From Trichoplax adhaerens (taxonomy: Eukaryota > Animalia > Placozoa), in the NCBI RefSeq assembly GCF_000150275.1, contig NW_002060971.1, forward strand, positions 165,212 to 229,211: 64,000 nucleotides of DNA. Reading direction: 5' to 3'. The position numbers were made by a program, and so were the translations under genes. A model generated the notes under the pieces. It was not told the origin of the DNA. It made no database searches and saw only the letters and a program-made list of their open reading frames with translations. Position 1 is the stretch's first letter, and each line of letters opens with the position of its first letter. Shown piece after piece: positions 8,941 through 60,365 of the stretch.

Positions 8941-10053
8941 CCAAGCAAGTGGAAGAGGGGGGGGGGTGGACTTGCCTACAGTACACAGTACTGTAGGCAA
9001 GACGCCTTCCTACCGGACAGACGACGGACTGCTGCAGGCCAAGGAGGCAACCACGACTGCCAGTACTCTACTGTGTACAGTAGAGTACTTGGAAAGAAGA
9101 GAGTCGAGTAGTCCCTGCCTCCACTACAGTACAGTATGTAGACTACAGTACATACTGCAGTAGAACGGTGAACAGGTCTGCAGACTCTCATTTTGATGAC
9201 GACTTGCCTACAGTACACAGTACTGTACTCTACTGTACAGTGTACAGTAAAGATCGAACCTGTTTACGCTATACTACTGTATTTACCTGTCAACAGGCTC
9301 AGAGATCGCTATATAAATGAGCGCATCTCTAGCTAACGATAGTGATTATACCTCGTCTCTCTCTTGTTATCCTCTCTGTCTTTCTTTAATAAACATAGTT
9401 TTCTTGACTGTGAGTTGTACGTCTCTGCATACAACAGAATATATTACAGAGTAGTCCCTGCCTCCACTACAGTACAGTACTGTACAGTACCGTATGTAGA
9501 CTACAGTACATACTGCAGTACAGTACTGTAGAACGGTGAACAGGTCTGCAGACTCTCATTTTGATGATGACTTGCCTTCCTATCGGACAGACGACGGACT
9601 GCTGCAGGCCAAGGCGGCAACCACGACTGCCAGTACTCTAGTGTACAGTGTACAGTAGAGTACTTGGAAAGAAGAGAGTCGAGTACTGTACGTACAGTAC
9701 CGTACAGTAGTCCCCTGCCTCCACTACAGTATGTAGACTACAGTACATACTGCAGTACTGTACACCGGTGAACAGGTCTGCAGACTCTCATTTTGATGAT
9801 GTCATTCAAGCAAGTGGAAGAGGGGGTACACTTGCCTACAGTACAGTACTGTAGGCAAGACGCCTTCCTACCGGACAGACGATGGACTCCTGCAGGTCAA
9901 GGAGGCAATCACGACTGCCAGTACTCTACTGTACACTGTACAGTAGAGTACTTGGAAAGAAGAGACTCGAGTAGTCCCTGGGGTGACTACAGTATCCACA
10001 CTACAGTACATACTGTAGTAGAACGGTAGACTCTCATTTTGATGATGTCATTC
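8941..10053. repeat. ~250-bp composite repeat, about 3.5 copies, with copy-specific CAGTA/CTGTA/CCGTA insertions
   Basis: Shared backbone GGACAGACGA.GGACT.CTGCAGG.CAAGG.GGCAA.CACGACTGCCAGTACTC...GGAAAGAAGAGA...AGACTCTCATTTTGATGA recurs at ~8941-9230, 9449-9806 and 9807-10053. Confidence 0.92.
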
Positions 10054-10069
10054 TGTGTCGGCATTCAAC

Positions 10070-10475
10070 GATCATGGGCAAACTTGGAGTAAACAATTTT
10101 TTGTTTGGATCGTTTTGCCGGTCTTAACTCCAGCTACAGTGTTGTACATAAATAGGACAAGATTGGACTTTTACAGCAAGTTCGATACTGTATTATCACC
10201 GTGTGTCCATGATGCTGGAGAATCTTGCTTTAGTAAGAAGTTACAGTAGTCAGGGCACGGCCATTTGTGGCATGTGTAGATCATGGGCAAACTTGGAGTA
10301 AACAATTTTTTGTTTGGATTGTTTTGCCGGTCTTAACTCCAGCTACAGTGTTGTACATAAATAGGACAAGATTGGACTTTTACAGCGAGTTCGATACTGT
10401 ATTATCACCGTGTGTCCATGCTGCTGGAGAATCTTGCTTTAGTAAAAAGTTACAGTAGTCAGGGCACGGCCATTT
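10070..10475. repeat. 209-bp tandem duplication x2, near identical
   Basis: GATCATGGGCAAACTTGGAG at 10070 and 10279; only a few substitutions; explains twin ORFs 10055 and 10267. Confidence 0.95.
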
Positions 10476-10901
10476 TATTCAAATTACAAAGATACTTGGG
10501 GTAGATTAGTGAAAGTCCTTCGTCAAGAACAACTAATAACGGATACAGTATGCACTGTACAGTGTATGGGGACTTGTCAGACAGGACGGAAAAAAATTTT
10601 CTCCCACGACTTTCTAGACATGCTCAGCTTGACTGTACTGACTGTGTCGAGTTGCGCTTTTTCCTTCAGTCTACACTCACTATCACTGCTACTGTACAGT
10701 ACAGTACACTACCAGTAGTTCATCTAGTAGCCAGAGTTTATTACCCCGACGGTCAGACTATCGGACTGACGGATTCAGTCCGGGACACCACGCCATCGTT
10801 CAGTGTAGACAAGTGTAACGTCAACTTGCGAACCGAACCGTGACAAGTGTAATAGCAACGTTACGTCGATTCGGCAAGGCAAACCCTCCAACGATCGCAA
10901 G

Positions 10902-13885
10902 ATGGCCATCAAAGTAGCAACGTTGCTCGCAATCATTCTCCTCCTTCTTGGTAATCCAGTATCAGGACAAGTTGTCAAATTGACGGGGAATAATTGGAAG
11001 CAAGCCTTAACTGGAGAATGGATGATTAAATTGTGAGTATAGCTTGTGTAGGATTCATGCTTGAAGAATGGTACAGAATGATGAAAAATAAGCATTGACA
11101 ACAAGCTGAATCCAGTCAGCATCCATCGTAGTGGTAGTTTTGCACCCATTTGCCATAGTCAATGCTCACTGGACTACAGTATATCCGACATTAGCAATCG
11201 TTAGGCATGGACAAACAATAATCAATGGATACGGTAGCTGTGTATCTGCATAGCTGAATATCAATTGAAAAATAATGCAATAGTAGTTGTCATCAGCTAC
11301 TGCAGTACAGGATAGAAATACAATCGATCACATAGTGCACAGGAGCAAATGGAGAAAACGACGTCATGACTATTTCCATATACGGTAGCAATGACTATTG
11401 TTGGCTTCCTCCTATAGTAATAGTCTTACTGTGGATCATTCAAAAGAGACGATCAACATCAATCATGCTTTGCAAAATGGGAAATGACAATGCTACAGTA
11501 GTTACATCATGAAAGTACAATTCCCAAAATAATTGTTGATACTATCCTCTCCTATCATCTCAAGCCCTCCACGTCTACAGTAGAGTAAAAGAAGCCCTTC
11601 TTCCAATAGTCGTTGACTGGAATCAAGCGAGCGATACTCTACTCTACATGTATACTACCATAGTAGACATATTCTCAAATTTAAAAAAGAATTCAAAGTC
11701 ACATTGAATACAGATATACGTGACAAACTGAGATTTATTCTGACAGTAGTGGAACATACAGTACGCTTATCCTTTCATGAATACATCAAAATTGAAATAC
11801 CAATACAGGATATCACTACGGTAGGTAGAACATCAGAACCGTACAATCAACCGTAAACTACTAAACTTTATCATAGCAATCCAGCGGTAAATCAAGTTCT
11901 TTTGCTGATGGTTCATTCATCACGATACCTTCACATGCCGTGTCAGTAATAGTAGAATCTTATGATCACCAGGATGTCAATCCTAAATTTCTGTATCATG
12001 CACGTTACCCTGTATGAGGTAAACATCACCCGATTATATTATAATGATCAACACCTAACGCTTGTTACAATCGGACCTTTCCCAAGTGTTGCAAGTAATA
12101 GGAATATTATACATATTATTCACTTTTGAAACTTTATCTCATTTTACCTTCAATACTAATCCACTCATCTATACCTCTATCGCTACGCATTGATGCGTTA
12201 TATGAAATCTTAGCTATGCTCCTTGGTGTCCAGCTTGTCAAAACCTTGCTGAAACATGGACTAATTTTGCTACGTGGGCAAAAAAACAAAAGGATCATAC
12301 TGTCAGCGTTGCAGAAGTAGATGTAACACAAGATGAAGGTTAAGATCACCGTAATAATGAAAGCGCAATATTCTGAACTACTGATATAATGGCGATGCCA
12401 ATTACAATTGTATTGTCATATTATGATCACCATCATGTTACAACAGTAGCCATGATTTACATTTCTCATTCTATAGTCAATATTAAGTAAGACTCATCGC
12501 TGATGTTTACCGTAATGACTTTTCGGCTTATTGACTGACTGACTACAAAGACCTAGTTATAAAGTGTCATTTAGCCCTAGCCGTAGGTGCACTGTAAATG
12601 TTGCAAAACAAGTAATTGTGAAGTACTCTACAGTATGAGTAGGACAACACAATAATATTGCTATCATAGTGACACAACAGGATAGCCTTATCGAACAAGT
12701 GACAATAAATAGATTTGGTCTAACGTCGGAGTTCTTTTTAGCTTTAGGAGCACAATTTATGATCACCGCCTTACCCACTATCTTTCAGTAAGCAACGAGC
12801 GGATTATTCTATTCATATCAAAATCGATTTCATTGTCAATTTATGGTGCCATGATGTTGATGCAAACTTTTACTGAAAATACACAGTGTAAAGAACGGCC
12901 AGTTTCGCAAATATTCACCTCCACCCACTTTAAGCAACTTTCAGGCGTACATCACCAATCAGAATTGGGAAAAAGCTGATCCGTTATCTTGGTGGAAATC
13001 GCCTAGCTCTATAACGTAAGTAGATCGCGATAAAAACAACCGATCAACACAGTATTTTGCCTTAATGCTTTACCCAATGAACTTATTCCGTACAGGATGG
13101 TTGGGCTTGGCTATTTATATAAATTCTCCATGCAACTTAAGGTTATCCACTGTTGATGATTAATTGAAAATAGCTACAAATTGCATCGTTATTATTGGCT
13201 TAATATTTCAGTAATATTTAAAAATCACCTTTCCGATCCAATATATTCTGCTAACTCACTACACAAAATTCCCAATAACAAAATTATAGAGTCTCCATCA
13301 AATGCTAGTATCAGAGTACAACATTCCGGAGTATGTTGCCTACGGTATAATGGGTCTTGGATTTATTATAGTCGGACTCGTTATTGCTTTGGTAAGTTTA
13401 CTCAAGAGATATATCAATCAAATTGTTTGTGTTACTAACATTGCAATGCTAACGGTGACAATTTTACCATCTCTTCAGCTTGGTAGTTCATTGATTGATA
13501 GTGCATTAGGAACTCCATCGCCAAATAGAAATGTTCAGGAATTAATAGATATGCAACAACCCGAAAATGATAGTAATACACAAGATCCTGCAACCAGCGA
13601 AGATGTTCAAGATAATAACAATAAGGATGAAGATAAAGATAGCACGGCGGGAACTGATGAAGGTGCAAAGGTTGAAGAAGATTACGTAATAGTCAATAAA
13701 AGTTATACCAAAACTGAAGGATCACCAAGAAGTAGTCCGCGCAGAAGGTTCATTCATTTATTACTCATTATATTACCGTTAACATTGATTAATTATTCTA
13801 TGCGGTATTGCTTTACGAGATGAAAAAATCTTATCCTAATGTTATCACTTCATTCTTTAGGAAACTAAAAGCGTCTGCCGATTAA
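10902..13885 (+). CDS. TMX1: Thioredoxin-related transmembrane protein, TMX1-type (8 coding exons)
   Basis: Signal peptide MAIKVATLLAIILLLLG; GEWMIKF|YAPWCPACQ (CPAC active site); FMITALPTIFH|VKNGQFR; WWKSPSS; TM helix YVAYGIMGLGFIIVGLVIAL; acidic tail ending RRRKLKASAD-stop. Confidence 0.9.
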
Positions 13886-18200: not shown

Positions 18201-19752
18201 AACCATGCCTACGGATAATATAAAAAACTTGATTAAAAGATTTATCCAAATTAACGTTCCAATCGGTAGTACTGTTTACAACCTATCCACCACTATCGCG
18301 TCATGAAATGTTTGCTAGTTAAATAACCTGTTCTTCTGGTTCCCATTTCATCCATCTTTCAAAAATTTGACGTGCAGCAGGTATGTTACCAAGCATTTCT
18401 TCCATGTACGTATATTTATACCTACAACGTTAAAATTGACCATAAGGTTAATCTTGACTATAATGGCCTGTAGCAGTAAGTCGAAAGAACTACGCGTGTA
18501 TATCAAAATTAATAAATTAACGTCGTATTCTTACCAAAATTGATTAGCACGAGGTAAAATAGTGACGGCTCGATCCCAAATATTTCTGGCATGATTTATT
18601 TGACGATTCCTTTATAAAAGTGGTTGTGTAAAATGAATATTTGTAGCAATTTGTATCAATGACAATTTGATTAGTCAAGGTAGCAAAGTATAAAGTCTAT
18701 ACTACGTGTATGTTCAATATATTACACATACCTCATTTCCATTTCAGCATATTTCAGCCATACTGCCGTGTTACGATGGTCAACGTCAAGACCTCTTTCG
18801 TAAATAGACCTAGCCCTATTTCATTAATTATATAATATATGCATTTTAGTGTCTGGTTAGGACAGAAGAGGATATCGTTGTCATTAAGCAGGCCTAAGCA
18901 ATAAAGATAGACGTTTAACCAATGGCACTGGCACACCCGTTACTAATTTTAAAAATTTCAATATGGTATTTATTAATGTATCCGGTTGAAGGTAGAGAAT
19001 ATTTACCGATCAATTTCGCGCTGACTCTCTTCCCAGCTAGCATATTTCAACCAATTCCCCATTAGCGTCCGATTCTTACGCAAGTTATCTTCGAAATCTT
19101 TCCTTTTCCTTAGCTGATAACTTCGTAATTCTTCGGGATCAGTAATCTTTTGCTTCGGTGGCTATAATCATTACGTAAAGCATTTATAATGCAAAGAATG
19201 CATTTATGATGATGATAAAGTACTGGTGTAGTATAGCTATTTTATCCAATTTGCTAAGATTGTACTACTAAAGTGTAGATCACTTGTTTGCAATGATGAC
19301 AACACGTTCATCCAAGTGATTGAATATTGAATTGTATTCATTACACGTTGTTAGTACTTGGCCAATGTAGCCTAGATAAAGCAACATTATTACCGGTGGA
19401 ATTCCTTCTAATTGCCTTTCTTGGGCTTCACGGAGAAGTTGTTCGGCCGTAATTTGTACAGGAGCAGGCAATTTATTTTTGACCTGGGTAGCAATATGAC
19501 AATTAATATAATCCATGATGATGATGATCGCACGCCATCGAGTCATACACCAGTAGATAGGTTATTGAATAGAGTAATTTTTCTCTTGTAATGTATCTTA
19601 TATCGTAAAGACTGCTTGTTCACTTGGCTATATACTGTACTTTACTGTAGATCGCTATCTCTATCCTTTCAATTGATTGATATAGCAAGAGTTACCTTTG
19701 CCACTTTGGGGACTGACGTCCTGACATTTCTATTTTCTGGAGCGGTTGACAT
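15233..19752 (-). CDS. CRNKL1: Crooked neck-like pre-mRNA splicing factor (HAT repeats), multi-exon
   Basis: [19 protein letters not shown]|[20 protein letters not shown]; FEDNLRKNR; [15 protein letters not shown]; HNYDVWFDY; WRRYIYLWI; C-terminus [12 protein letters not shown]...[11 protein letters not shown]. Confidence 0.96.
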
Positions 19753-21214
19753 TTTCAAGTTCTTCAAGTATGATATCGACACAAGCAATAAAACACTCTT
19801 TGGTAGTGTGCTCTCTACTAAGAATGTCAATCACTAAATAGGCAAAGTAAGGCAAAATCAATCAGCTTCTATCCACGATGGCAATATCAATGAGTGAAAT
19901 ATTGCAGTGATGTCTAACCTTTGCAATAATATTTCCAGGATGAAGAGCATCAGCGGCTAACGATCGTGGGCTCCAGACTGCAGTGTTGTACTCAGCTTCT
20001 ACAGTGTACAGTACAGCATACTGTAGTACGACAGTACTGTACAGTACTGTACTGTACTGTATTATGTACCGTGTACAGTGCAATATACTGTAGTACTACA
20101 GTACAGTTCAGTACGGATCCATTGGCCGGTTGCATTCCATACAGTACAGTACTGTACAGTACAGTAATGTAGAAATAAAAAGTACTGTAGTCGACGTCTA
20201 GTGGAGGAAATAACGGTTTGTCATTGAACATAATTTATGAATAAGTTCAACGTTGTATGTCAATTTTAACTCAAGAATCTTGTTATTCAACTCTTTCATG
20301 ATCGCTTAATGTATTATTTGTCTACTTTCCAAAATTTATTTTTGTTTGGATGTTAAAATTGATGGGCTAAAATATCTGAAACATACAGTACAGTATTCCA
20401 AGTTTTTACACACCGCCGTACAGTACTGTACAGTATGTACTGTACAGTGTACACTGTACACTGTATATTGTACAACGGCAGAGTGTCGACTATGGAGGTC
20501 CAGCGAGCTAACCAGAGAAAGACTGTTGCAGTCATTTTCTAGACTGTACTGTGTACAGAAAAACTCCACTGCACCATAGAGATACAGTACAGAAGATAGA
20601 AAAAAATCGCTCTTTAAGGAGGAAAACGTTTCCTATTCATGGAGACCCTAGTACCCATGAAAAGCATGGGACATGGAGACCTAGTACCCATGAAAAGCAT
20701 AGGACACAGTCACAAACACATGAAAAATGATGTTAAGCATGGCGATGATTTCGTACTGTGCTTGTGACATCATTTTTGCGAACGGGTTGGCTTGCTTCTA
20801 CGACGATTCAGCATACTAAGTGCAGCTGGGTAAAGGTGCTTTGGTGTACAGTATCGCCATCGACACTGTACGATACACTATACGTACCCATAACCTGATG
20901 AATGTGAGCAACACTCGAGTGCATAGAGCAAAGGCAATGTCACCTATTTAGAGTACTACGTACTGTAGGTGACAGTCCAGCTACAGTACATCACACTCAA
21001 GACAAGTACTGTAGGGTGTACAGTACTGTACTATACGCATGAGTACCAGTATGGTATGGTACGGTACGGTACGACACTGGTTAATCCAGTACACTGCAAC
21101 CGAACCATCCCACTGTGGCGAATGCCGAAATCGCCACTAGACTCCATTTTGTTTCTTGATTTTTCAACATCTTTTTACATCAATCTTTCCCATACATTCT
21201 ACAAATAAGACACT
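19753..21214. promoter_or_regulatory. Head-to-head promoter region (CRNKL1 / SRP54) with TA-CWG-TA island
   Basis: Divergent ATGs at 19752(-) and 21215(+); motif chains at ~19999-20190, 20384-20590 and 20845-21095. Confidence 0.75.
20638..20706. repeat. 34-bp tandem duplication x2
   Basis: CATGGAGACC(C)TAGTACCCATGAAAAGCATRGGACA at 20638 and 20672. Confidence 0.85.
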
Positions 21215-25262
<4,048 letters not shown>

Positions 25263-33265: not shown

Positions 33266-33559
33266 TAACATTTGCCTTCTAATTTGGCACTATCAATCGT
33301 GAAACTTCCATCTAGCAAATGAGTCCCATTGCAGACAGACTATCACCATGACTATCATACTCAGTCGTCAGTACTCGATGAAGACACGCCATTGGACTTT
33401 TCCGCTCTATTTTGTAGTCATTTTAATTCATTTTTAGAAGGGGACGAAATTTTTAAATTTTTCTGTCTGTCGTCCATGACTGATTGGATAGTAGCTGGTA
33501 GTTCAACTTCCGATTCATTTTGCCTATACAAACTGTGTAGACTGGAGAACGACACCGTC

Positions 33560-34409
33560 GAGTAGACTACAGTCGATATCAAGGCAGCAACCGGCGAGAG
33601 TGGTAAAAGTTCATCCTCTCACTCGAGCCTTTTACAGTACTACAGTCCAGCAGAGTACAGTACTAAGGTTTTTCTACAGTACTGTACTGTAGGAAAACAT
33701 ATGCACAATCTCTTGGATACGGCTTCCTTTCACGATCACTTTGGCATACGGCGCTTGTTGAATAACACGGCGTACGGAACACAACCCTAGCGGTTGTCCT
33801 AAGCCAATCTGCTGAGACCCGGTATGACATGCAAAAAAAAAAAGCAATGATTGACCCTCCCAAACGATCGTTTGTACCGTGACATACACACGAGTCACAC
33901 GCTACGTGAACAACGGTGAAGCGATGAGGTCGGACGCTAATAAAGTCAACTCGTAGCGCTCGTCCATCCCTATTCTACTGTACGCTCACCACTGGTGTAC
34001 TGCTGTCATTTTCCTCTAGGATTTTATTCAACTGGTGCAGTCGTTGAGGCCAAATCGACGCACAAATTGAAGTCTATTTGGATCAATTTTATTCTATATT
34101 ACATCCTTTGACAACCCTTTTGCACCAATTTTGTATCCAAGTACCGGTAAGATTGCTTAACTATGGCTATTTGTTTTTTCAATGGATTGGTAATTTGGGT
34201 ATTCCTTTTTGGAAGGTTTTTTTTTTTTCATCTTAGTGGTTTTGCTGTACTGTAGGTGTAGGACAACTTTCTTTGAGGTAGACGCTTTTGCCACTGTCAA
34301 CCAATTGAAAGCTTCTTTTTTTTTTTGTCTCTTTTCCTTCTTTTACTAGCGCTTGTACCTCGTTGAAACCATTTTCAATTGAATTGCTGCCAAATTACAA
34401 CTGCCAAAA
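33560..34409 (+). promoter_or_regulatory. AKT promoter/5'UTR region with smaller TA-CWG-TA island and probable 5'UTR intron
   Basis: TACAGTACTGTACTGTA at 33675-33691; GC-richer segment; CCAAT near 33804; donor-like GTAAG at 34147 and pyrimidine tract + AG ending at 34349. Confidence 0.55.
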
Positions 34410-40768
<6,359 letters not shown>

Positions 40769-45500: not shown

Positions 45501-48500
45501 GTACTGCCAGGCCGTTTCTCGGGCTCCTTACCGTCTTCATCGGGTTCAACTCGAATACTTTTATATTGATCGGCAAGATGGACCTTATGAAATTTAATTT
45601 AGGATTTAAATGTAATGATCATCGCCATACTAATGCAGGCTGATGAAATAGAAAGGAGTCGTTGGGGGATTGTATCACTTAATAATAAATTACGGTCCAT
45701 AAATTTATCACTGTACCTTCATAAATTTCTTGAAACTATTATCCAATTGTGGACGGATAAAATCCTGGATTGCTATTAGAATTTCTTCTTTGGGAGGATT
45801 AGATGGATTCTTCTTAATGCTATTATATAGCTTATCCGGTATGAGCACATTTCTTGATAGATGGTGGTAGCAAAGACAACTTTTAGTTAGGTATGACAAA
45901 ATTTATAAATCTTACCAATCTATGATCAAGCTTACCTTCTTGCATCTTGCTTGATGTACACCCTAATAAGAATAAGAATGGACGGCATAAGGTAAGGAGA
46001 AAATAGATTAAATGATCTCAAAATTGTGCCAGTAGTACAATCAAGATTAGAAGGATAAGGTATCATTTGAGCCAAGTGTTATCGTTTAGGTTCAATTTTA
46101 ATCTTACTTTAAGATATGATATGACTGAACTTTTCGCTGTGATTTCTTGACGGTTGGAATTTTTTTAAATACTTCAATATCCAAATAGAGCAGTAATTTA
46201 TTAAAATGTTTTTCTTCGGCATTTTTTTGGATGAAATTTTTAAAGGAGTCCATAGTTCTAATCCAAAATAACGAATTCAATAGCGTTAGCCATCACTATG
46301 CAAAGATGAGTAGGGGTATAATAGTTTATAGCAGCAACTTACAATTTATCATCCGTAAAGGAAATAAATGACAATGGCCGAGTAATACTACGATGGCTTT
46401 CAATCGAGACTTGATCATCATCTTTTTCTTGCATAAGTGTTTGTGCTTTAACTCCTTCCTTAATCATATTTAGAGTACGCTGTTGAGCACTTTTGCTGAT
46501 CCTCTTTTCAGTGGCGGATGAACCTGTGCGTTCGCTTGGCGATCCTAACTTTCGCTTATTTATATTCATTCGATATTTTGCATTTTTCAGAGCCATGTAA
46601 ACGTAATTATTATCATCGGCTAGCGTTAATGCTCGATGTAGCCGAACACCACGTTCTGAAGCTGTTGAATCAGGACGTCTATCAAGAAAAAAATTTGCAG
46701 CAAGAAAATCGTTAAGATTGCAAATGGACTGGAAAGGTTCATTAATTAAATCTATAGGTAAGCAATCTGTCCTTATTTCTGACATCGCTATTATCATCTA
46801 CTAGGGATATTCTTAAATCAGTAGGCTCAAAGTAGCAAATAGCCATGCTCCAATATACTCGTATTTACCTCTTCCAAGATGATGGATAGACTGTAACCAT
46901 GTCGCGAAAACTAATACGACTTCTATTTCTCGGTGTATGCGATGGTGTAGTTGCGAATTCATTAAAGGTGCCATATTCGACTTCCAAAAAGCCGCGAATA
47001 TCGGTTTCATAAAAATCTTTCCAATGGTTACGTAAAATTTCTTCAACTCGAGCCTATGAAAAAGATAGATCAATTTTAATTTAGCTTGTAAGTGAATGGA
47101 TGAGCAAAATTTGAGATGTAGCAGAGGATAAGAACGAAAGACGATCACGCTATCTTGACTATCTTGAATGCTACCTTAATAGCATAAAATCCAGCACTGT
47201 ACAATGATTGCTGATCTTCTCGTTGTAAGAATTGGCGAATATTTTCTTCTTCTTCTGTGGTTGCCCCAATGTAACATTCTCCTTCTTTGTTAATAAATCG
47301 CTTCCATAAGCTCCAAGCTACTGATAACTGATAGCGTCGATTTGAACTTAATTCTTCAACAGATTCCATACTGCTAATTTCTTTCCAAAATGAACAAATA
47401 GAGATCGCTTGCGATAGTTTTTGCCTAGTCATCAGTCCAGTTAATTCAATGAAATTGTTAAAATTATAAAAAAAATTCAATTGATGGAGGAAATAATGGA
47501 CCTCCAATGAACACTAGCATCTTTGCTCGTCTACAATTATGCCATTTACCTTTCTAAATAAGCGATAAATGGATCACCAGCTAAAGTATCATGGCTCAAA
47601 CCAGCAATAAATATCTCCGTTGTAAATGGACTAGACGGTTGAAAATTTGAAAGAGCATAGTAGAGGGATAAGCATATAATTAATTCAATCAATTGATTAA
47701 CTGCGCTAAGTATAGTCCAATAAAGATGGATGCAGCACCTGGACTATCCTTATAATTATAGGTAGAATAAAAATGAAACGAGATATACTCATCTGTACAG
47801 ACTTACATCTTAGATCTTATACCGGCGGATCGAGTCTTTTTCCTGCTACTACCCCTTGTACCGGTTGGATTTAAAAATTCAACCTTATCTTCCACTTCTG
47901 GTGCCTTACTAGCAAATGGATCTAATGGAGCCGATGTATTTCGTCGAGGACTCAATGTAGGTAAAAAAGTTAAACTCTGATAAGCTCTTTGCTTTAAAAT
48001 ATTATCGACATCTTCAATTTGATGAGTAGCAAGTTCCTCTTTCAATTTCGCTCTATAGTGATAAAAAGTAGCACCGTAAGTAGATATACTTGTATAAGTA
48101 TAAAGAATTAAATTTACTGGAATATCTGTACTGGTAATACTAGGTAAGAATCTACAATTATAATAATTTCGACCAATAAAATTAGATATAAAGAATTGAA
48201 TTTAGTAGAATATCTATGCACGTATTACGCGTTACGCATCTAAAGCTATATTAATTTCTACCATTGAAATGAACAGATTTACTTTTAAAGATTTAGGGCT
48301 ACAATAGCTCGTTTACACGATATAGGGCAATATCAATAAACTTTAGAGCGAAGTAAAGAAACGAGAAATTAAGATGATTTAAAAACCGTTATAAAATAAC
48401 GCTTACCTCAATGATGGAACTTTCTCGACATGGAGGAGAAATCGATTACACCAATACGATCTCAATCTTCGCAAGATATCATATTGCGCTTTTGCGAACA

Positions 48501-51500
48501 ACGTATGGCTAATGCCCTCATCTTTCTTGGCTTTACGAATCTGAGCCTAGGAGGAAGATTTTATGAAAAAATTTTCTATTAAAATAGAGCTAACCTTAAC
48601 TGCTTAAGAATGAACTAGATATCACAAATAGAGCAGGCATCTTTATTTATGCGCAATATAATCCTATAGCAATGCAAGGATCAGTAGAATCATACCTTAG
48701 CATCATCGGTCAATTTGGACTTATATTTGTCTTCGATTTCTCTAAATATACGTAAGTTTAAAATAGTTTGATATTAGATTAGACGTCAGTGAATGCTTTG
48801 CATATGTTACGTATGCTTAACGCTTACTGAAATAGTTTGACACTTTTTTAATTAAACAGCAATTCTAATCCAAGCTGTTTATTAATTTAGAACGGCTTTA
48901 CAAATGGGATACTATAGATGTGCTAGCCAATGTAATTGAGAAAAATTTTGCTCTTTATCTCTATCATTAATCAAATTTAACTATAGCTCTATATTGGATC
49001 AGATATAAATGAGTGGTATAAGGTAAATTTTATCTAATTCTATACCCTCAAGTGTTATTGAATCTCGTTTATATCATTCCTTAGATTGAAATTTCTGTAT
49101 TAAATCAAATGTTTACCTTGATGTACAAGCTACATATATCATGTTAATATAATTAAGAGTTCCAGTTACTGCTCTATTTAATGATAGATAAGCTATTTCA
49201 TGATAATATACTTAAAAATATTCATTTCTGCTTTATTTAAACTACTCATGAAGGTAGAGTATAATTTACTATCAGCAGAGCCCATATAGGTATGCCAGAT
49301 CGAATAGCTTTTATTAATCAGATAATGTAAGTAACAAACGTAATTAAGTTTTGTATTCCACAGGAATTCAATGCCTTTTCCTTTACCTAACTAGCTTCAA
49401 GCGCCATTCCTTAGTATCATGGAGATACTTTGAACATTTCTCTTTATAATATTCAACATCCAGCCAAAATTGAAATAAACTTTCACCGGTAGTACCACTT
49501 AAATAATTTTTAAATACGCTCATTCCGGACAACTAAATTACCATGATGACAATAAATTAGTGTCTAATAGAGGTGACTGTATGGCTAATCAATATGTTAA
49601 TAATATGAATTTAAACATACCGAGCCCAAAATCTGAACTTTAAGATCATGTAGGCTCATTTTCCATTTGTCGGCTAAACTTTTAATATCGGCTTCAGTCC
49701 TTTGTGTATCCTGTAAACTTTCACTATCTCCTCTAGAGAAATCAATAACACTCCCTTTACTAAATGCTTGATCTCCATCAAGACTATCGTTTTCTTCGTC
49801 GGTAGTTTCAATGTCATCGAAAATTTGATCAAGTTCATCAGTCATATCGATAATGGTATCTCCTTCATCTTGGCCATAAACTTGTTCAAAATCACCATGG
49901 CCGAGTTGTTCATCTTCCTCAGCAATGTGGCCCACACTATCATAGGCTGTAGTTACTATATAAGACAGTACCGGTAATGATATTTTTAAATAGAATTTAT
50001 GATCAAATTCAGTATGGCATTCGTCATAAACTACAAGACTAATATTGCTTATAATTTTGTGAATGCATAAATGCGGTTTAATTGGTACACAATAGTTTAA
50101 CGGTATTCCTTTACATTTATTTTCCCAACTTACATCCTCCTCTAGTTTGACCTTGGCTTCTCCTAGTTTTTGATGGACTATTTGTTAACATTGTACCTAA
50201 ACCAGTATCGGCTGATGTGAATCCGGAAGCTTTAGCATCTGCCGATAGTGGCATACTTTTTTGATATGAACCTGTAATAGAGATGAATCATACAGTATCT
50301 CGAATTACTGGCAATAAAATGCTGAATTTTAGAGGATGAATATTGTTATAGATAGGAAACGGAGAAAGAATAAAGATATAAGTATAGATACTACAAACTG
50401 AAATCTAACTGTAGAGTACTACAGGGTATCATCAAAATCAAATTATATAAGACTCCAATGGTATAGCGAGCAAAACCTATTTTACAGTGTCATCGATCAT
50501 AAAATTCCATGCATTCCTTACACAATTTTATATGCAGGTATAGGCATTGAGAAAATAGAAAAGCTAACTGTAGTCAATGCGAAGATATTATTAAAATCAA
50601 ACTGTGTATGAATACAATGAAAAAGCATCCAGTAAAATCTATATAAAAGTATCGTACTAGAGATGAAATAGAATATTGTCAGAAATAGCAAAAGCAAGTC
50701 TGCATGTTATGTCTTACTATTTCGATTTCCATCTTGCGATTTTCCATTGCCGCTTCCATCATAAGATTGGTCATCTTGAGTTGGATAATTCTGATTTTCA
50801 TCGTAGGTATCACTACTCTTAGTCGAATGCTGGCTATGTTTGGAGTAGGATTTACTTAACATTGGTGGTAAACTAAATGCGCCACTTTTTGGTCTTTTAT
50901 AAACGGGTGGCTGACGGATATCGGATAAGTTAACATCTTGATATTCAGGATCATGTTTTTGACGCGCTTCGATGCTACTCTGGGGCCTTCGTCTTATTGA
51001 TGCCGATGGATGTGCTCTTGCAAATTGCTTATGGACAACTGTAGCAATATCATCGGATCGGCCAGGCGCTGATCCTAAGCGCCTTCGCGTTGTCGAACTA
51101 TATGTTTTGGAAGTAACATTAGATTGACTGCAACTATAACCTCCAAGTCGTCTAGAATTTGCTGAATGTCGTGCTGAAGATCCACGTTTCATATCAATTC
51201 GTTTAATCAATAATTTACATAGTTTATATTCTTGATAGATGCGCGTTCTGTAAAATGAATTGAAATCATTTTATAATTATAATGAATTATGTTTCCATAA
51301 GATTATAACTAATATTATCGTGCATAGAATATTTATAAATTTAGTAGTCGCAATCCTTATTATGTATAACTAAATGACTAGGGTGCTCTATTTAGTGATC
51401 TATTTCAAGTAAATCAGAAAAAGTTTCACTAGAGAGATTCTCTCGTATTCTAATACCTTAAAAAATAAGGCAATCGTTCAACAATGTTCCAGTTAAAAAC

Positions 51501-54039
51501 AGCTTCGCGTCGAGTAACTTTTTTATATGCTGTTGGAATTTCTTGCTGCGAGCCTTTTGTAGCATTACCAATATTTAGAGTAGATTGATTTGGATCTGGC
51601 TTACAAAGTGTTCCGCTCTGATGCTCAAATTGAAGCTTTTGCCCAAATACCTATATAAATTAATTAATTACAAAATAGACATTATAATATCAAGGTGAGA
51701 AGTTGTCATGAAATAGAACTAAAATGAAATAACCGTTACGAGTCGTAAAGTGTATAATTCCATAGTTATTTATTAGATTAAGCTCAGTTTTAAATTTTTA
51801 TTATAGAAGATGAGCAAGAAGATCACCCAACAACAATTTGGGATTTTTAGTACTCAATCAGTGACAGGCTTCAAAGCATCCAATTATATAGATTAGTAAA
51901 GCTATTTAGCTTTCTTAAACTGGGTATACTAGGTATTCAACACTGAAAATGAATTTGCTAATTAGTTGAACTCGAAGTAAAATATTGAAAATTTAAAATT
52001 ATAAACGATAGTTCAGCCATCATATTTGCAAGTAATCCTACACCAATTTATATCAGTTTGAAATAGCATATGATAGTTTAACTGAAGCAGTCAATAGGAA
52101 AGATTTTATTACATTATACAGTTTATGGCTTTTTCTAGGTTAGCTTTTAAACTGTAGGAAAAACCATGTTACTGTTGCACATTTACAATCGTTACTTTTA
52201 GGTGTTATAGATGAATGAATATCATGATCATACAAGCAGCTGGCCGATGCATTGCATCGCTGTTCCAATATAGATACACACCCACATACAGTAATTTTAC
52301 GAAAACTTCTTGTTTTAATAATTTTAAGTAGAATGCTATAAAGTAGAAAACAGGATCTTGCTAGGAAAATTGTTTAGTTTTCATAATAAATCGAAATGTG
52401 ATACTGTAATAGTGTATTAAACTTAAGCTAGAAATATACGCAAGTAGGAAGCTATTCAGATGTTTAACATCTTACTCATGCTGAGCATAATTCTGACCGA
52501 ATAAAAGAGCCATAATAGATTGCGATAGCGAAATATTAGACTAGAGTAAAGTGGTGATTTAAATAACACCATGAAACTTAATTAAAAATTAGATTTAAAT
52601 AATTACCGGTAGTCGCAAGAAAGCATTGTAATAGTCTGCCAGTAATGGATCATCAAGTAACATTTGATGAAAGTTATAAGCAGTAATATCCATGTCTTCC
52701 AGGATCCAAGGAGATTTAGTTAGAAACAGTTATTAAAGAAGAAAAATTAAATGAAATAATTCGATGAGATAAATTGCTATTTCTATCAACCTATATTTTA
52801 TTCTAAATATTACTGCGTTATATATCAAGGCGAAAATTAGGATTAATCTCTTATTCTATTGTATAAATATTTTATGATTATAGAACTAGCTATATTATTC
52901 TTCATTACTATTTTATGTTTATTAAAGCCTATAATTCTATACAATGCTTAAATATATTTTGGCCTTATTTAATAATATTACGACTTGATGTTATGACATT
53001 AAAATAATTTTAGAATTATATTATATAATTTAAAGTAAGGTTAGATCTTGAGAATTTCTTCGAAATAATACTTTACTCAACTATTAAGGGTATAATAGAA
53101 TGTGGAAAGAATGTTAATTTGAATGATGATATCATCTAATCAAAATCTTATTATTTAGCTCAATGGCTAACAACGGCCATGATTATAATTAATGCTATAG
53201 TGAGTTTTCTTAAAATAGTAAATGTAGTATCGTGGCAGTTGAGCATTCTTTCGAAATTAGAAGAATAGATTAGTAAAGACAGTATATTTGAATGAATATC
53301 AAGTGCGGTAAAGTATTGTCTTCGATTTTATGTCAATTAATATATTTAGATCAGTGTTTTCTGAAGAAAGTATGAAGTTAAGCAGCGATTGAATTTTAGA
53401 GGATGCTGGTATGTCAGTTGACTATAAATGCTAAAATTAGCCTTGTGGCTCTTCTTGCTTTTAAGTAAGCAATCGGCAATAAAATATATTAAAAATATTA
53501 AACTTTGTGATATATAGATACGTAGCATCATAGAATATTTCCTGGAGAAGAGTTCTAATGTGCATATAGGAAGTGAGCAAGGAAATTACTGATCGGATAG
53601 AACAAAATCTTGAATGCTAGGGTAAAGAAATAAATGATGGCGTTACCTTTGACCATCCTCATCATTAAGTTATACTGTATAACGATTTGCTTATTATATA
53701 CGTAATTAGATATTTAAATGAAGAAATTATAGGCTAGCGGGATGTACTGGCTAGATATACAATTATACATGTAGTTATAATTGATCACGATTGATTGAAA
53801 AAGCTATTATCATGGCCGTTAAAACCACATTGACCGAGCAGAAAGTATTAAAAAATGGAAAATTTCATCAACTGAGGATAATTTAATCTATAGTTGTAGC
53901 GTTATTTAGCGATATGGAACATAAATATCAAAAACAAGAAGAAAGGATTAAGGTGTTGGCACTATATCCTATTATTTGATTTATAGCAACGCTAGTATCC
54001 ACAAGACTGATCGATAATCTTACCATTATATTTCCCCAT
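42566..54039 (-). CDS. RGS22/RGSL1-like multi-RGS-domain protein; start uncertain (54039, ~53665 or ~52693)
   Basis: N-terminal DITAYNFHQMLLDDPLLADYYNAFLRLP|VFGQKLQF resembles the RGS22-family N-terminus. RGS-like segments: FKNYLSGTTGESLFQFWLDVE; ICSFWKEI; LLLYLDIEVFK; NDLCFWLEIQKYK; ECYLLSQSPPPVQ|VDV. Last exon ends DTDFSL-stop at 42566. Confidence 0.75.
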
Positions 54040-57000
54040 TTTGGAAATTTAATCGTTTGGATGTAGCTGGGTTAGTTATTAGTTATAGGCAAAGTTTAAC
54101 TCCCATGATAATTTTTAACCTGTAGTGAAATGGATGATTAAAAACTCCCATTTTCGACTAAATTAAATAACTAATAATCTATAATAATACCTATATTTTG
54201 ATAGGAGGATATTATTTAATTATTTATGATTCAGTCTTCATTCTGATTAATCTATTTAAAAATATAGAAGGGATTCAATCTCTTCGTCGTCTTCTTTTTT
54301 TTCTTATTGACTAATATGTCTTTAATGATATCTGACTTCGATGATCTAACAGCAACATCTACTTTATCATCATTAGGCAAGGTAAGCTTTATTGGTTACT
54401 ATGGTAACCTTCAACACTGAGATTTATTGCTATGGTAGTTAAAATGAAAGGCTTTATTATTAAATTGATGATTTTAGAATTACAATTATTAAAGCATGTA
54501 TAAAGAATTAATTCTGTTTGTACAATGCAGTAGTGCAAATAATCATTTTAACAATAATCGCTCAATCACTACATTATGATGGCATAGTAAAGTATAGAAT
54601 TGCGGTATTACTATTTATTATTGCAGTAGTTAAATTATAGGAAGGATACTGGTATTATTAGTAAGTCGTTGCTAGAATTCTATAAATTATGCGATAGTCT
54701 ATTTAATGATATATAAGCATACGAAATTTGATATAGAAATTCACATTTAATAAAAATTTGAAAGTTGTGACTAGTTCACTACATTTTATCATTTACTTCT
54801 CACATAAACAAAGTGTATCAAGTAAGGATAACTTTCATTATCATAAGAACTTCTGCATCACTAGAATTGGCACTTTGCTATCATTACCTGAGGGCTTCAT
54901 TATATAAAATAATGATGTGACAGTATGTAGTAATAGTCTACTAGTTATATATTCAAAAGAAGAGAGTTTAAGACAGTCTAGAGGAACTAGAGTGTTCTGT
55001 TAATACGGAGAAAAGAATAAGCTTTACTAAGTGACTGATATTACTTACTTCGATTTATTAGACAATCACCAATTGTTTTAATTTTAAAAACTCTTTTAGT
55101 CCGCATAGCTGAAGTTAAAATATTACTATAACTTAGGTAAATTTGACTTGAATGCCACTACTACAGCTACGAAAAGCCTGCAAACATGATCTACTGTATA
55201 ATATAACAAAGTATTGTTTTCAGAAGGGTAAAATATCATGGGTACATACTGTAGTGATTAAACGTCATCAAACTCAAATATATTTCAATCACGTAAGGCC
55301 AAAATTGACATAGAGATAATTGTTTCCATTATCAAAGCTAACTTTGTTAAGGATAAAATAAGATAAAAACAGTAAATAAGATTGATTTAGATATTGGGAG
55401 CCATCATTACATGATACGGCAGAACAGTAAAACCTAGGCTAAATTGGAAGTTATTCAATCATGCTGCTTTTAATGAATGAGTGAATTTTAAAGACTAAGG
55501 AGACTTAAAAAGTTTCTAATTGAAGAAAGATATTTATGAGATATTTTTTAGGCAATCAATCTCTATTCATATAAATTACGACAGTATGATATGAATCATG
55601 AAATTTAGTTTTTAAAGTTTCTTACTTATAGCGTTTTAGCAAGAAAAAGAAATTGTTACTCAATTCAAGCTGCAATTAAGCATATTAATGCATAAATAAT
55701 AACATTGATTTCATGGTCAGCCTTACAGTATTGTAAGCTGTATAAATAGATACAGCGTAAGATTAATTCGCGTTGCAATTTCATGAATAGATTGATATAA
55801 GTCATTTAAAAGATTTTATTTAACAATGATTAACATCGTAATAGTTAAAGTAATTAGTATTAGATAGTAAACGACAAATAGTTGAAGTTGATATATAAAC
55901 ATGTGAATATTCTCTAGCGTACAATTATTTTTCAGAGATGACTTTGTTTAACAAATAGAATAACGTTTTGTTTGAAAGTTGCATCTACGCTCTATTATAT
56001 ATAGTGACTGTATATTCTAAATTTAAATGTTAATTTTACTATTAAACTTAAAAAAGTATCAATAAGTAGGTCTGATGAATTTATTCACTTAGGAATACAA
56101 GATACAGCAGCAGCTAGAAATGAATTGAGAATTAGAGGTATTTACTGCTATAAGTAGCACGTAAGCTTTTGTAACATTCTCCAATAGGACAACAAATCAA
56201 TGAATTGTCATATACTGTAAATATACCAATGATATGAAAGCATGTTGACAAGCCAGAGTAGTGATCACTGTGATAAAGAAAAATATTTTTGGAGATTATT
56301 AAATAATCAAAAAATTAAATGCTGATTATTCTTATCAATGGAGAATGACAGTTGACTAATTTATCGTTATTTTTGATCGAGAGACAAACAAAATTGTTGT
56401 ACAAAGTTGACATCTGATAAAGGTCATGCAAATTAATTATTATGTTGATATAGCTATTGATCGATTCGCGTCTACAACCCGCAGTAATTTTCCCTGCAAG
56501 AGTTCTCAGTTACCCTAGGTGTAGATGATTGTAGACTTTTGCGAAGTAGTGAAGTAAGACATTTAAATAATTATGGAGCAAAATCATTGCAATGTATTCA
56601 GATTTTCTATCTAGACCATGATTGCTATTCTATTTCAGCATCACGCAGTGACAAGGAGTAAATAATTATAGTGATTGAATACTTTTAGTTATAAATCTGA
56701 TTTTGTGCTGTAGCGATCTTAGAACCTCAGATCAATGATCAGTTACGATATGACACATTAAACTTATATCACCCTAGATCAGGCATCAATATAGAATACC
56801 CATATTACGATAATCTTTAACTTTTTTCTGCAATATCTGTGTGTATTTGAATGACTGCAGGTAGCGAAGTATATCTGTATCTTGAAAGGTTTGATCCTAT
56901 ACTCTACTATTATTACATAAGCAAGGCAATATGTAAATTTATTCCATCCCTGAACTAACGTTTGACAACATTTTCGATCAAGTAGCTCAATAAGTCGGTA

Positions 57001-57256
57001 TATGGGATCTAAATTAACTTTGTATGCGATTAATGGTAAAAGGGGTATCTGATACGCCTACTTTGAGCTCTTAATCAATTGCTGACTGTTGATTCTTTGA
57101 GTTCTAAATAAAGTGTTGGATGTAAAAGGAAGTAGATACGAGCAATGGGGATTTATTCTTTTATTGATCGATGATTGGAAATTATCGTGTATACTGTACA
57201 AGACTATACTGTAAGAAATTGAGGTAAGATATTTATAATTTATTATATAAGATTCT

Positions 57257-58617
57257 TTATTGTGTAGCCATAGTCTTCTTTCCTTTCGTTCGCCCAATGC
57301 GTTTATCTTTTTTCTTCAATCCGACGATGTTTCCTTTTATAACACTAGCATAGGCCTATTAAAATAAGATTGAATTTGTCGAATAACTACCGCTTGCTCA
57401 TTGAACAATAATCAAGACTATTCTAATTGTAATTTCTGAGCTTATCCTTACGAGTTGGAATTTGTTTAATTCTTTAGAAACAATCTGTAAAAATGAATTT
57501 ATTGCCTTGTAAGTTATTGTTTTATACTCGATGTATCAACTAACAAATGTAGGTATTATTTTGCAGTACAGGTATAAAGCTATTCAAGATAGATAGGCAG
57601 TTATCGTATTTACGCAATACTACTACGAAGACTATGAAGATAGTCATCCGTTGAATGGATAAGAAGATATTACTAATTTATTTAAGTTTAGTATGATGGT
57701 CAAGACTCAAGTTTAAGTCGGGGTCTACTTATTTTACATGGACTTACCACATAACTGACTTTCCTTTTCCCATTGGTGGCTCTGATCAGACATTTATTAT
57801 CACCAGTCGATTCATTTTTATCTCCTTTACAACTTTTTGGTTTAGTACGACCATCATCTATGCAAGGATTGATAGAATAAGAATGGATTATGCTTGTAAT
57901 CTCCTATCGGCTAAGAATGATTGCTAGGATTGATGGTTGATATTGATTTCTACTTTCAAAGATTATCTTGAAATTTCCGTCAGCTATCATCGTTTATACT
58001 ACTAATCAGCTATTTTGGTCAATGGCGTCATCAACAACTTCATAGATTGCTTTTCAACTAGTCACTACAATTATTATGTAGAGTAGAACAATTGCATGAT
58101 ATCCTGTCCAGTAGTTAATTACAATATAGTTGTCTGAATACTGTAGGGTTGTATACTACTCGTCTATTGAATGATATGGTGTCCATGACTGAAGTCAATA
58201 TAAACTTTTGCTACAACACGTTGTAGCGATTTCGATTGTGCGTGATTCTGCTGAACTAAAGTGATGATGATTGTATCATAAGCAGGAAAAATACTGGAAC
58301 ACCTGTATTAGGGCTAAGTGATCATCGTACTTGAACTAGATGATGCTGATGTATAAGTTAAATGGAAGCAAGGATAGCCTTGCACTGCTGTTGTCCTACT
58401 AGCTGTTGACTGCATTTTGACATATCCAAATGAATACTTACATCGTTTAATAGTGACAAATAGTGAATTCTTATTTCGTGTCTCTTCGAAAAGTTTGGTT
58501 AATTCACTCAAGAACTAAAGCAATAAAAATAGAGACAAGTGTTATGATCGCTGTCAATGGATTGATTATCAAATGGATTTTTCATCTTACGCTATCGTAG
58601 CTCTTGAGCAGCACCAT
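57257..58617 (-). CDS. SRP14: Signal recognition particle 14 kDa subunit (5 coding exons)
   Basis: MVLLKSYDS|FLSELTKLFEETRNKNSLFVTIKR|YDGRTKP...NKCLIRATNGKRKVS..|..SKELNKFQL|AYASVIKGNIVGLKKKDK. Confidence 0.93.
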
Positions 58618-60365
58618 GTTGGAATCGAGGCTGGTCGTAATAGTAACGGAGATGCTTGTCGCTTGAATAACTGGAGTGAGTTTTGCGGTCAAGCCAAGCT
58701 AATTGTTGATTGCTTCCCTTCTAACCAGTTGCATGGGCTCATGTACGATACACTATCGAGTCGGTGAGTTAGTGATGTCCAGCAGTAGACGCCACTAGAG
58801 TGCATGCGCACTACATACGCTACAAATGGTCTACAGTACACTGTACGTCGTTTACAATACAGTATGTACTGTACTGTACACTTGGCTGAAACAGCCCTAC
58901 TAAAGCAGTTATAGAAGTTCATGGCGAAGACAGTGAAATACTATTTCGGTAGGATTATTTCAGCGAAGTGTATGATGAATTGAGAGCAAAATAAATAAGG
59001 CTACTTTACACTTACTACAGTGCAGTATTTGCCAATGGTGTACATTGTATCTTTCCTATCATTGACTGTTACTAGTCAAGTCAATTTACAGTAGACATAC
59101 AGTACTGTACTGTATGCTTTTGGCTTGAACTGGGTACGGTACGGTATGGTTGAGTACTGTACTGTACGTCTACTGTACTGTACACTGTACATTGTGGACA
59201 GGACTCTGGTCAAATTGTGTATTTCTGTCCTGCTACGTCTTGCCTCCAATGGTCAAGTAAATGTACTACAGTGTACAGGACAGCTAGCAGGACTCTGGTC
59301 AAATTTTGAATAAATAAATGTATTGTATTTTTGTCCTGCAACGTCTTGCTTGCAATGGTCAAGGACACTGTGTGCAGGACAACTAGCACGACTCTGGTCA
59401 AATTATGTATATTTGTCCTGCTACTTCTTGGTTCAAATGGTCAACTACTGTATTCCCAACATTGACCGTACTGTCGTCGGAGAGTACAGTGTACAGTACT
59501 GTACACTGTACACTGTACAGTATGCTTTTGGCTTGAACTGGGTACGGTACGGTATGGCTGAGTACTGTACGTCTACTGTACTGTACACTGTACAGTACAT
59601 TGTGGATAGGACAGCTAGCAGGACTCTGGTCAAATTCTGTATTTTGGTCCTGCTACGTCTTGCCTCCAATGGTCAAGTAAATGTACTACAGTGTACAGGA
59701 CAGCTAGCAGGACTCTGGTCAAATTTTGAATAAATAAATGTATTGTATTTTTGTCCTGCAACGTCTTGCTTGCAATGGTCAAGGACACTGTGTACAGGAC
59801 AGCTAGCACGACTCTGATCAAATTATGTATATTTGTCCTGCTACTTCTTGGTTCAAATGGTCAACTACTGTGTACAGTTGTCGGAGAGTACAGTGTACAG
59901 TACTGTGCACTGTACACTGTACACTGTGTACAGGACAGTGAGCACGACGACTCTGGTCAAATTGTGTGTACAGCAAAGCAGTACGGGTAGTGGACGTACT
60001 GTACCGTACCGTACCGTACCGTACCAGACCCACATCAAGCCAAAAGCATTTACTCTACTGTACCTGTATGGTCGTTGGGCATACAGGTGACTTGCTTGTG
60101 ACTTCTACGCACGCGCATGACACTGCCGACTCCATCATAGTGTTTTGTAATCGAGTGAGAAAAGAACACAGACAGTACTACCCTTCACAACGGTTGGAAA
60201 CCCTACCCTGCCTGATCGCAGCTCTCCCTAGTCTAGTCATACTGTCATTGCAATCGGTGCTAGTTCATAACAGTCGACTTGCCACATCAATAAGGCAATT
60301 TTCGCCATTTTCCTTGCATTGATCCTTGAAATTGGTGAGCAATTGAAGCACTCTTGCCATGAAAA
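58618..60365. promoter_or_regulatory. Head-to-head promoter region (SRP14 / VPS39) with TA-CWG-TA / TA-CSG-TA island
   Basis: Divergent ATGs at 58617(-) and 60366(+); dense motif chains from 58830 to 60070. Confidence 0.75.
59100..59970. repeat. ~420-bp tandem duplication built of ~100-bp subrepeats (GGACAGCTAGCA.GACTCTGGTCAAATT...GTCCTGC..C.TCTTG...AATGGTCAA)
   Basis: ATGCTTTTGGCTTGAACTGGG at 59114 and 59522; twin ORFs 59210/59630 offset by 420. Confidence 0.92.

Follow-up and report, generated by a model that had tools for sequence, protein, structure and literature searches.

A 64-kb stretch of the Trichoplax adhaerens genome, hereafter the window, contains dense clusters, or islands, of the heptamer TAC[A/T]GTA in the DNA 5' of several of its genes, and the results presented here establish that the unit of these islands is a TA-bounded heptamer that is gained or lost as a 5-bp block, and not the repeat of an ordinary head-to-tail microsatellite. 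The islands are instances of the promoter-associated (ACAGT)n repeat already published for T. adhaerens, since organism, motif and location, within about 1 kb 5' of genes, all match. Their grammar, which resembles that of transposon excision scars, is a real and unpublished property of the repeat, and in the literature searched we found no paper linking placozoans with excision footprints. As the origin of the units we tentatively favor self-copying repair combined with slippage; pure slippage, or selection on point mutations alone, is excluded as the sole cause.

Within the window, TAC[A/T]GTA occurs 155 times, against 14 in dinucleotide shuffles (maximum 25), and 99 of the 155 copies lie within four islands that together occupy 4.9 kb:

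8941..10720, no strand assigned: island 1, flanked by the starts of LRR-SRCR (-) and TMX1 (+); 41 TAC[A/T]GTA, 23/kb; chain cover 17%
19950..21080, no strand assigned: island 2, in the divergent promoter region of CRNKL1 (-) and SRP54 (+); 28 TAC[A/T]GTA, 25/kb; chain cover 19%
33560..34300, no strand assigned: island 3 (weak), 5' of AKT (+); 7 TAC[A/T]GTA, 9/kb; chain cover 6%
58800..60070, no strand assigned: island 4, in the divergent promoter region of SRP14 (-) and VPS39 (+); 23 TAC[A/T]GTA, 18/kb; chain cover 21%

Shuffle means amount to 0.1-1.6 copies per island, the density outside the islands is 0.95/kb, and the whole window contains 40 chains of at least two units. A reading made from the sequence alone (the sequence-only reading) had placed dense TA-x-TA chains at these four spots, and with three strong islands and one weak one this observation is largely right and statistically overwhelming, its object being already known. 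The accompanying description of the promoters as paved with units overstates the case: chains span no more than 17-21% of each strong island and, in the weak island, 6%, and local tandem duplication makes up much of islands 1 and 4. In an unselected genome sample of 16 pieces of 10 kb (160 kb), 4 of 147 kb-bins hold at least eight heptamers where 0.06 are expected, and the islands are thus a genome-wide feature. The heptamer occurs at about 1.7/kb, which extrapolates to about 1.8e5 copies in the genome (assembly of 105.6 Mb in 1,414 contigs).

Word enrichments were computed on the window and the sample together (224 kb). When all 64 TA-NNN-TA words were scored, CAG (9.3x) and CTG (8.0x) were the only strongly enriched centers, with CCG at 3.2x and CGG at 2.7x, and the TACA[G/C]TGTA words TACAGTGTA and TACACTGTA were each enriched about 12x. 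The TG and CG units of the list originally proposed stand at chance (TATGTA 1.0x, TACATA 0.7x, TACGTA 1.4x), and hardly exceed it even immediately after another unit. The same sequences contain 16 copies of TACGCGTA (7.7x) and five of TACTGCAGTA (22x), while the mirror form of the latter, TACAGCTGTA, is absent.

Successive units share their TA, and 67 of the 136 unit spacings of up to 30 bp are exactly 5 bp; within islands, 80% of CAGTA/TACTG pentamers belong to complete TA-C[A/T]G-TA units. The units are not the identical head-to-tail copies of an (ACAGT)n microsatellite, because only 57.9% of 32,173 adjacent pairs genome-wide have the same center (18,630 same, 7,220 CAG-then-CTG and 6,323 CTG-then-CAG; controls 8-21). 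The other 42% have opposite centers with the remaining six bases intact, and same and opposite centers number 33:34 in the unbiased sample. Assuming that slippage always copies the neighboring unit and that other gains are random, slippage need account for about 16% of adjacencies. Pairs of CCG/CGG (S) units are found only 429 times genome-wide and 77% of them have the same center, which makes these units more slippage-like than C[A/T]G units. Palindromic chains show no excess over expectation. Outside islands, isolated ACAGT/ACTGT cores are enriched 4.7x with T..A flanks and 0.6-1.9x with every other flank; the entity that is born or kept is therefore the whole TA-bounded heptamer.

The window represents the H1 allele of T. 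adhaerens, and we compared it with Trichoplax sp. H2, whose loci align to window positions 898-23910 and 47264-64000 at 97-99% identity. H1 and H2 have alleles in common at most loci (Kamm et al. 2018, PMC6057997), and their sequences are for that reason most naturally interpreted as two old haplotypes that differ by about 1%. The two alleles do not differ in island 1, which is therefore silent on turnover; the turnover comparison rests on islands 2 and 4 (2.4 kb). The tract of about 3 kb at 8880-11900 has 0-1 H1/H2 differences, against 8-18 substitutions in each of the flanking kilobases, and looks like a shared allele, as might be expected from the admixture described by Kamm et al. 2018.

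The alleles differ by at least 12 unit events in the 2.4 kb of islands and by none in the 35.6 kb aligned outside them, where the 17 small indels include no unit-type one. The four unit differences at unit-free TA sites are confined to islands (Fisher p = 1.4e-5, on TA counts), and in the islands unit changes are nearly as frequent as substitutions of all kinds. In island 4, H2 has an extra CAGTA at the unit-free TA sites 58898, 58912 and 59407; the change at 59407 is found in both tandem copies and is the only one for which gain and loss were polarized, through paralogous sub-units. H2 also has 15 bp of additional mixed units at 58840, CAG-TA-CTG (58850) being among the multi-unit gains, a complex +9 at 59094 and one copy more of the 420-bp unit at 59104-59871; H1 has two extra CCG units at 60001, and one center is flipped between the alleles. 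In island 2, 10 bp (CTG, CAG) are added at a unit-free TA at 20493, with a base change adjoining, and we further found a block replacement at 20053-20063, a multi-unit rearrangement at 20431-20470, two center flips, tandem 5-bp changes at 20384 and 21023, and another of slippage type at 20097. At 20153, a 7-bp tandem duplication of TGTACAG in H2 creates a CAGTG unit, and this observed event replaces the earlier proposal that CAGTG/CACTG units arise by joining overhangs with a 1-nt overlap. In assembled contigs of other runs, which break within the chains, both 5-bp indels listed for island 2 remove one of two identical neighboring units. At 20638-20706 lies a minisatellite with a 33-bp unit of which H1 has one copy more.

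Paralogous tandem copies tell a similar story, differing chiefly by unit blocks at TA (9684-9709 in island 1, and loci L025:2033 and L011:1060). At L025:2033, a unit of opposite center stands between two CAG units in one of three tandem copies. In island 1, a 24-bp mixed chain is present in only one of three tandem copies, the other two having a bare GAG-TA-GTCCC where the chain sits, and its rare CAG-TA-CCG context recurs 200 bp away. The repeats and tracts internal to the islands are as follows:

8925-10047: island 1 tandem array, three copies of about 290 bp
9684..9709, +: 24-bp mixed chain (CTG, CG, CAG, CCG, CAG), in one of the three tandem copies only
10070-10475: second repeat of island 1, 209 bp x1.9
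21050..21073, +: (ACGGT)n-type tract with TATGG/TACGG units, about 10 bp ahead of where SRP54 RNA contig coverage begins
59104-59871: island 4 tandem unit, 420 bp x1.9
59114..59144, +: left arm of a local inverted repeat (ATGCTTTTGGCTTGA... segment and ACGGT tract), with a second direct copy at about 59522
59997..60025, -: (ACGGT)n tract, on the + strand TA-CTG-TA-(CCG-TA)x4; H2 has two CCG units fewer, a slippage-type difference
60011..60049, -: right (inverted) arm of the island 4 local inverted repeat

Units are thus present at a unit-free TA of the other allele or copy at 58898, 58912, 59407, 20493, 9684 and L011:1060, and all new units lie 14-40 bp from existing ones. That insertions always duplicate the adjacent unit was the outcome named beforehand as speaking for pure slippage; duplication of an identical neighbor accounts for about half of the events (20097, 20384, 21023, 60001 and 20153) and fails for the rest, among them 58898, 58912, 59407 and 20493. 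Slippage alone fails, because at least four unit changes sit at TA sites without a unit.

The building block is TAC[A/T]GTA, with a TA common to neighbors, hence a 5-bp period, and an effectively random center base, and two processes act on it. The first, visible in the allele differences, is ordinary replication slippage in steps of 5, 7 and 10 bp, which alters copy number, makes (ACGGT)n runs and, by duplicating TGTACAG across a CTG|CAG junction, generates CAGTG/CACTG units. By the second, likewise visible between alleles and copies, whole units of either center are gained or exactly lost at TA sites, unit-free ones included, and only within islands. This second process may be endogenous: breaks or stalled forks in quasi-palindromic arrays lying in open chromatin could be repaired by short template copying from neighboring units, in either orientation, by means of TA/GTAC microhomology. 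In this way the array would be self-seeding, and a role in promoter architecture would keep it at promoters.

Endogenous copying of this kind requires no transposon and fits the restriction to islands, the nearness of templates and the messy events, and we consider it plausible, if somewhat short of probable. Local templating is suggested by the block replacement at 20053-20063, the substitution adjoining 20493 and the complex +9 at 59094, as well as by the recurring rare CAG-TA-CCG context and by templates 14-40 bp away. Several observations weigh against it. The insertions at unit-free sites measure 5, 5, 5 and 10 bp and are all in TA register, where generic microhomology repair predicts a spread; isolated units far from arrays are enriched solely as the full TA-bounded heptamer (4.7x, versus 0.6-1.9x); about half of the non-slippage gains fall at TA outside chains, as if the TA sites of an island were hit whether or not units lay there; and unit centers look independent. 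The seven non-slippage gains are all on the H2 allele (p = 0.016), which neither endogenous copying nor transposon excision explains well. Snap-back synthesis is not the source, since palindromic chains are not in excess, and a hairpin or snap-back origin was rejected on this ground.

The principal alternative, and the one advanced by the sequence-only reading, is that the units are cumulative excision scars of a CAG-ended cut-and-paste element of the Tc1/mariner/pogo type landing on TA in open promoter chromatin. We regard this as unlikely, though well within serious consideration, and hold as equally doubtful its more general form, in which a low-copy or lost Tc1/pogo element, or a domesticated transposase acting on units, would have left one scar per hop, the scars later serving in promoter architecture. 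The heptamer is identical to the canonical Sleeping Beauty scar; TAC[A/T]GTA is the sole strongly enriched TA-NNN-TA word, and isolated units are enriched with T..A flanks only. Centers are nearly random (58% same genome-wide, 33:34 in the unbiased sample) with no palindrome excess, and TA sites without a unit are seen with whole units added in steps of 5 or 10 bp, about half of the non-slippage gains being outside chains. A low-copy 'hit-and-run' family could, moreover, leave scars far outnumbering its copies, and remnants of the superfamily do exist. Profile searches of the genome returned four matches to HTH_Tnp_Tc3_2 and one open reading frame (ORF) matching DDE_3, together with three intact single-copy pogo-type ORFs that have open frames of 550, 419 and 426 aa and combine HTH_Tnp_Tc5/CENP-B_N/HTH_psq with a full DDE_1:

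G000:C1396:1272742 (L006): pogo-type ORF without terminal inverted repeats
C1373:146174 (L007): pogo-type ORF without terminal inverted repeats
C1411:7363514 (L008): pogo-type ORF without terminal inverted repeats
L005:895-1968 (G000:C1409): Tc1-like 358-aa ORF TRIADDRAFT_57505, single copy; protein identical in H2 (TrispH2_008830)

A search with the mariner profile PF01359 gave no match, with an equally blank control, and is hence uninformative. TA-CAG...CTG-TA repeats flank none of the transposase-like ORFs of the genome, and no dispersed miniature inverted-repeat transposable element or other element was found in the islands, the repeat units of island 1 (236 bp) and island 4 (420 bp) being local only. 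Scanning of about 275 kb for TA-flanked inverted repeats starting with CAG, CTG, CCG or CGG detected only chain-on-chain or local palindromes. As far as this genome was searched, then, it holds no TA-targeting, CAG-ended Tc1/mariner/pogo donor, and the published surveys, in which both genomes are almost transposon-free, agree: transposable elements make up 0.13% of the H1 genome, none of them active and with 11 mariner/Tc1 fragments among them (PMC2871265), and ORFs for transposase, reverse transcriptase or integrase number 12 in H1 and 9 in H2, the DNA transposons being mostly Ginger (PMC6057997). A donor should still be recognizable, because the unit changes separate alleles only about 1% apart. 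The lack of such an element had been named in the sequence-only reading as an outcome that would refute its idea, which on that count is at present unsupported.

A motif of island 4 was also considered as a mini-element. This hairpin-like, TA-flanked motif of about 38 bp (GCAGGACTNTGGTCAAATT ... GTCCTGC) is repeated at 59199-59440 and 59620-59860, and elsewhere in the genome it occurs at just two loci (G000:C1400:333664 and G000:C1414:5404962); with three loci in the genome, it was rejected.

The spectrum of scars presents a further difficulty for an origin by excision. The minor scars of Sleeping Beauty (TACATA, TATGTA, TACGTA, TACTA and TAGTA) made up more than half of events in one assay (bioRxiv 10.1101/659086), yet here they stand at only 0.7-1.5x, chain-rich loci included. 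At 60580, a 1-bp indel at the center of a unit distinguishes TACAGTA in H1 from TACGTA in H2, and the TACGTA 'minor footprint' word can therefore come from decay of a full unit. The presence of TACTGCAGTA without TACAGCTGTA and the origin of CASTG units by slippage also speak against scars, and neither block replacements nor center flips are scar events. Excision would in addition have to account for some 1.8e5 heptamers in the genome and would need promoter targeting, which is atypical for the superfamily; we know of no promoter preference among Tc1/mariner elements. Scars would explain the exact form of the units, the TA register at unit-free sites, the random centers and the isolated heptamers, but need a donor that neither our searches nor two published surveys found; our lean against them is modest.

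Selection offers another explanation, in which the heptamer is the binding site of a placozoan factor and ordinary mutations, sorted by selection, suffice to assemble and maintain the clusters, with no special mutational process. The strict promoter location, the absence of an island at the RGS promoter, the enrichment of the full heptamer alone and the literature tying the repeat to upstream regions, loops and insulation all accord with a binding site. However, alleles and paralogues differ by whole 5-bp blocks in TA register and not by point changes, and exact 5-bp phasing is a mutational signature, so that selection could explain retention but not origin; as an account of how the units arise, we consider it improbable.

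More remote still, a domesticated pogo- or Tc1-type transposase might treat units as ends and recut CAG...CTG-bounded segments into nearby TA, which would make the repeat both scar and mobile element. The three intact pogo-type ORFs, which are candidates for domesticated transposases, and the Tc1-like ORF, all single-copy and without terminal repeats, would supply the agent, and some TA-flanked gains have complementary end triplets (CTG...CAG at 20493 and 9684-9709, CAG-TA-CTG at 58850). Such ends were seen in only three or four events, however, and a gain of one unit cannot be explained by integration, since the element would be 3 bp long. Binding or cutting of the repeat by these proteins is hypothetical, and the Tc1-like ORF TRIADDRAFT_57505 appears, by eye, to have its first catalytic Asp replaced; this possibility is very slight.

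Finally, an ordinary (ACAGT)n microsatellite changing by slippage alone, with mixed centers due to point mutation, can hardly be entertained: the repeat figures in the literature as a microsatellite (PMC2871265), several tandem changes distinguish H1 from H2 and the indels of the other-run contigs drop identical neighbors, but 42% of pairs have opposite centers, units lie at unit-free TA, an inserted unit is opposite in center to both its neighbors (L025:2033), and the more slippage-driven S units reach 77% same centers.

Genes were placed by exon translations, one PDB match, RNA contigs and the Trichoplax sp. H2 annotation of orthologous loci. Exons were searched one at a time, as single exons and not as a spliced model, and the Pfam and PDB searches with single exons mostly gave no match. 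The sequence-only reading had put the islands 5' of TMX1/LRR-SRCR, CRNKL1/SRP54, AKT and SRP14/VPS39, and all four do lie in 5' intergenic DNA:

8248..8475, -: first coding exon of LRR-SRCR, with signal peptide and CPxxCxC cap; start codon at 8475, or Met at 8355 in the H2 annotation
10902..11033, +: TMX1, first coding exon (100% identity to RDD42631.1 / XP_002117862.1, residues 1-43)
19694..19835, -: most 5' exon of CRNKL1 in the RNA contig; coding sequence starts at about 19752 in the H2 annotation
21215..21288, +: first coding exon of SRP54; RNA contig coverage from 21084, transcript from 21084 or earlier
34410 (start), +: AKT, with AGC-kinase and hydrophobic-motif exons at 38.6-40.7 kb
54040..57254, no strand assigned: control region 5' of an RGS gene (-), no island, 0-3 heptamers/kb
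58317..58617, -: 5' coding part of SRP14, start codon at 58617; second-exon ORF at 58317-58514
60366..60470, +: start of VPS39 (MPHTAFEKV...), where the coding sequence also starts in the H2 annotation

The SRP14 exon of the window exactly matches TRIADDRAFT_61901 of T. adhaerens. Heptamer counts per kb revealed no island in the 3.2 kb upstream of the RGS gene. Just 5' of VPS39, five H1/H2 substitutions fall within about 10 bp (60144-60152) of otherwise near-identical sequence, a cluster that may reflect a short conversion or repair tract. Just 5' of the weak AKT island, positions 32422-33265 hold a 289-bp tandem repeat (x2.9, 92% identity) that contains no ACAGT units and almost no inter-copy indels, unlike the indel-rich tandem repeats that bear units.

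These results concern the dominant simple repeat of an animal genome, which lies at housekeeping promoters and has lately been tied to looping and insulation. To our knowledge, the origin of this Trichoplax promoter repeat has so far been explained by nobody. The question is now narrower: the repeat is not a plain microsatellite, and whole TA-bounded units turn over in islands only. If a transposase is the agent, excision scars would here for the first time be seen to build a class of regulatory sequence across a whole genome, and in one nearly free of transposons; if endogenous repair is, nature would offer in these promoters a clear instance of a quasi-palindromic repeat that seeds itself.

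Several known systems resemble the islands in part. Polymerase-theta-type end joining and quasi-palindrome template switching yield short insertions templated, in either orientation, by neighboring sequence and joined through microhomology, at times together with adjacent substitutions or replaced blocks, and their lengths and registers are usually variable, unlike the exact 5- or 10-bp TA-registered units that unit-free sites receive here. The footprint TAC(A/T)GTA of Sleeping Beauty/Tc1 (bioRxiv 10.1101/659086; PMC6943129) is an identical 7-bp product, TA-anchored and adding 5 bp per event; in Trichoplax, by contrast, no donor was found, minor classes are not enriched, the units are promoter-restricted and number about 1e5, and slippage, block replacement and center flips accompany them.

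In the placozoan literature, ACAGT is the dominant microsatellite motif of T. adhaerens, with 54% of copies within 1 kb 5' of genes and 85% within 5 kb, and translation and kinase functions are overrepresented among the genes that have ACAGT upstream (Wang et al. 2010, PMC2871265); the enrichment of the repeat upstream of genes, which the sequence-only reading had inferred, was therefore already published. More recently, the promoters of housekeeping genes were shown to form hubs, with a loop-anchor motif placed in 'Mutator' terminal repeats (Kim et al. 2025, PMC12221973), and the Chimaera model extracted repeating ACGG and ACAGT motifs from Trichoplax contact maps (PMC12817080). That the islands act as a promoter mark is plausible, but the descriptive side of this idea had been published before (PMC2871265, PMC12221973, PMC12817080). 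Like the promoters in the two recent studies (PMC12221973, PMC12817080), those of the window are housekeeping ones, and islands 2 and 4 have ACGGT tracts beside their ACAGT chains. Island 4 also has an inverted-repeat pair that includes ACGGT, as might recall the 'Mutator' repeats of Kim et al. 2025, whose published motif logo lay outside the comparison; by inspection, however, this pair has no 9-bp target duplication and it is not dispersed in the genome, and because it is local and without such a duplication the 'Mutator' label is unsupported at island 4. The closest relation is with the (ACAGT)n repeat of Wang et al. 2010 (PMC2871265), which shares organism, motif and location and of which the islands are instances; that study treats ACAGT as a microsatellite and possible transcription factor site, and the present analysis goes beyond it in the TA-bounded heptamer grammar, the random centers, the CASTG/CSG variants and the turnover of units at the level of alleles.

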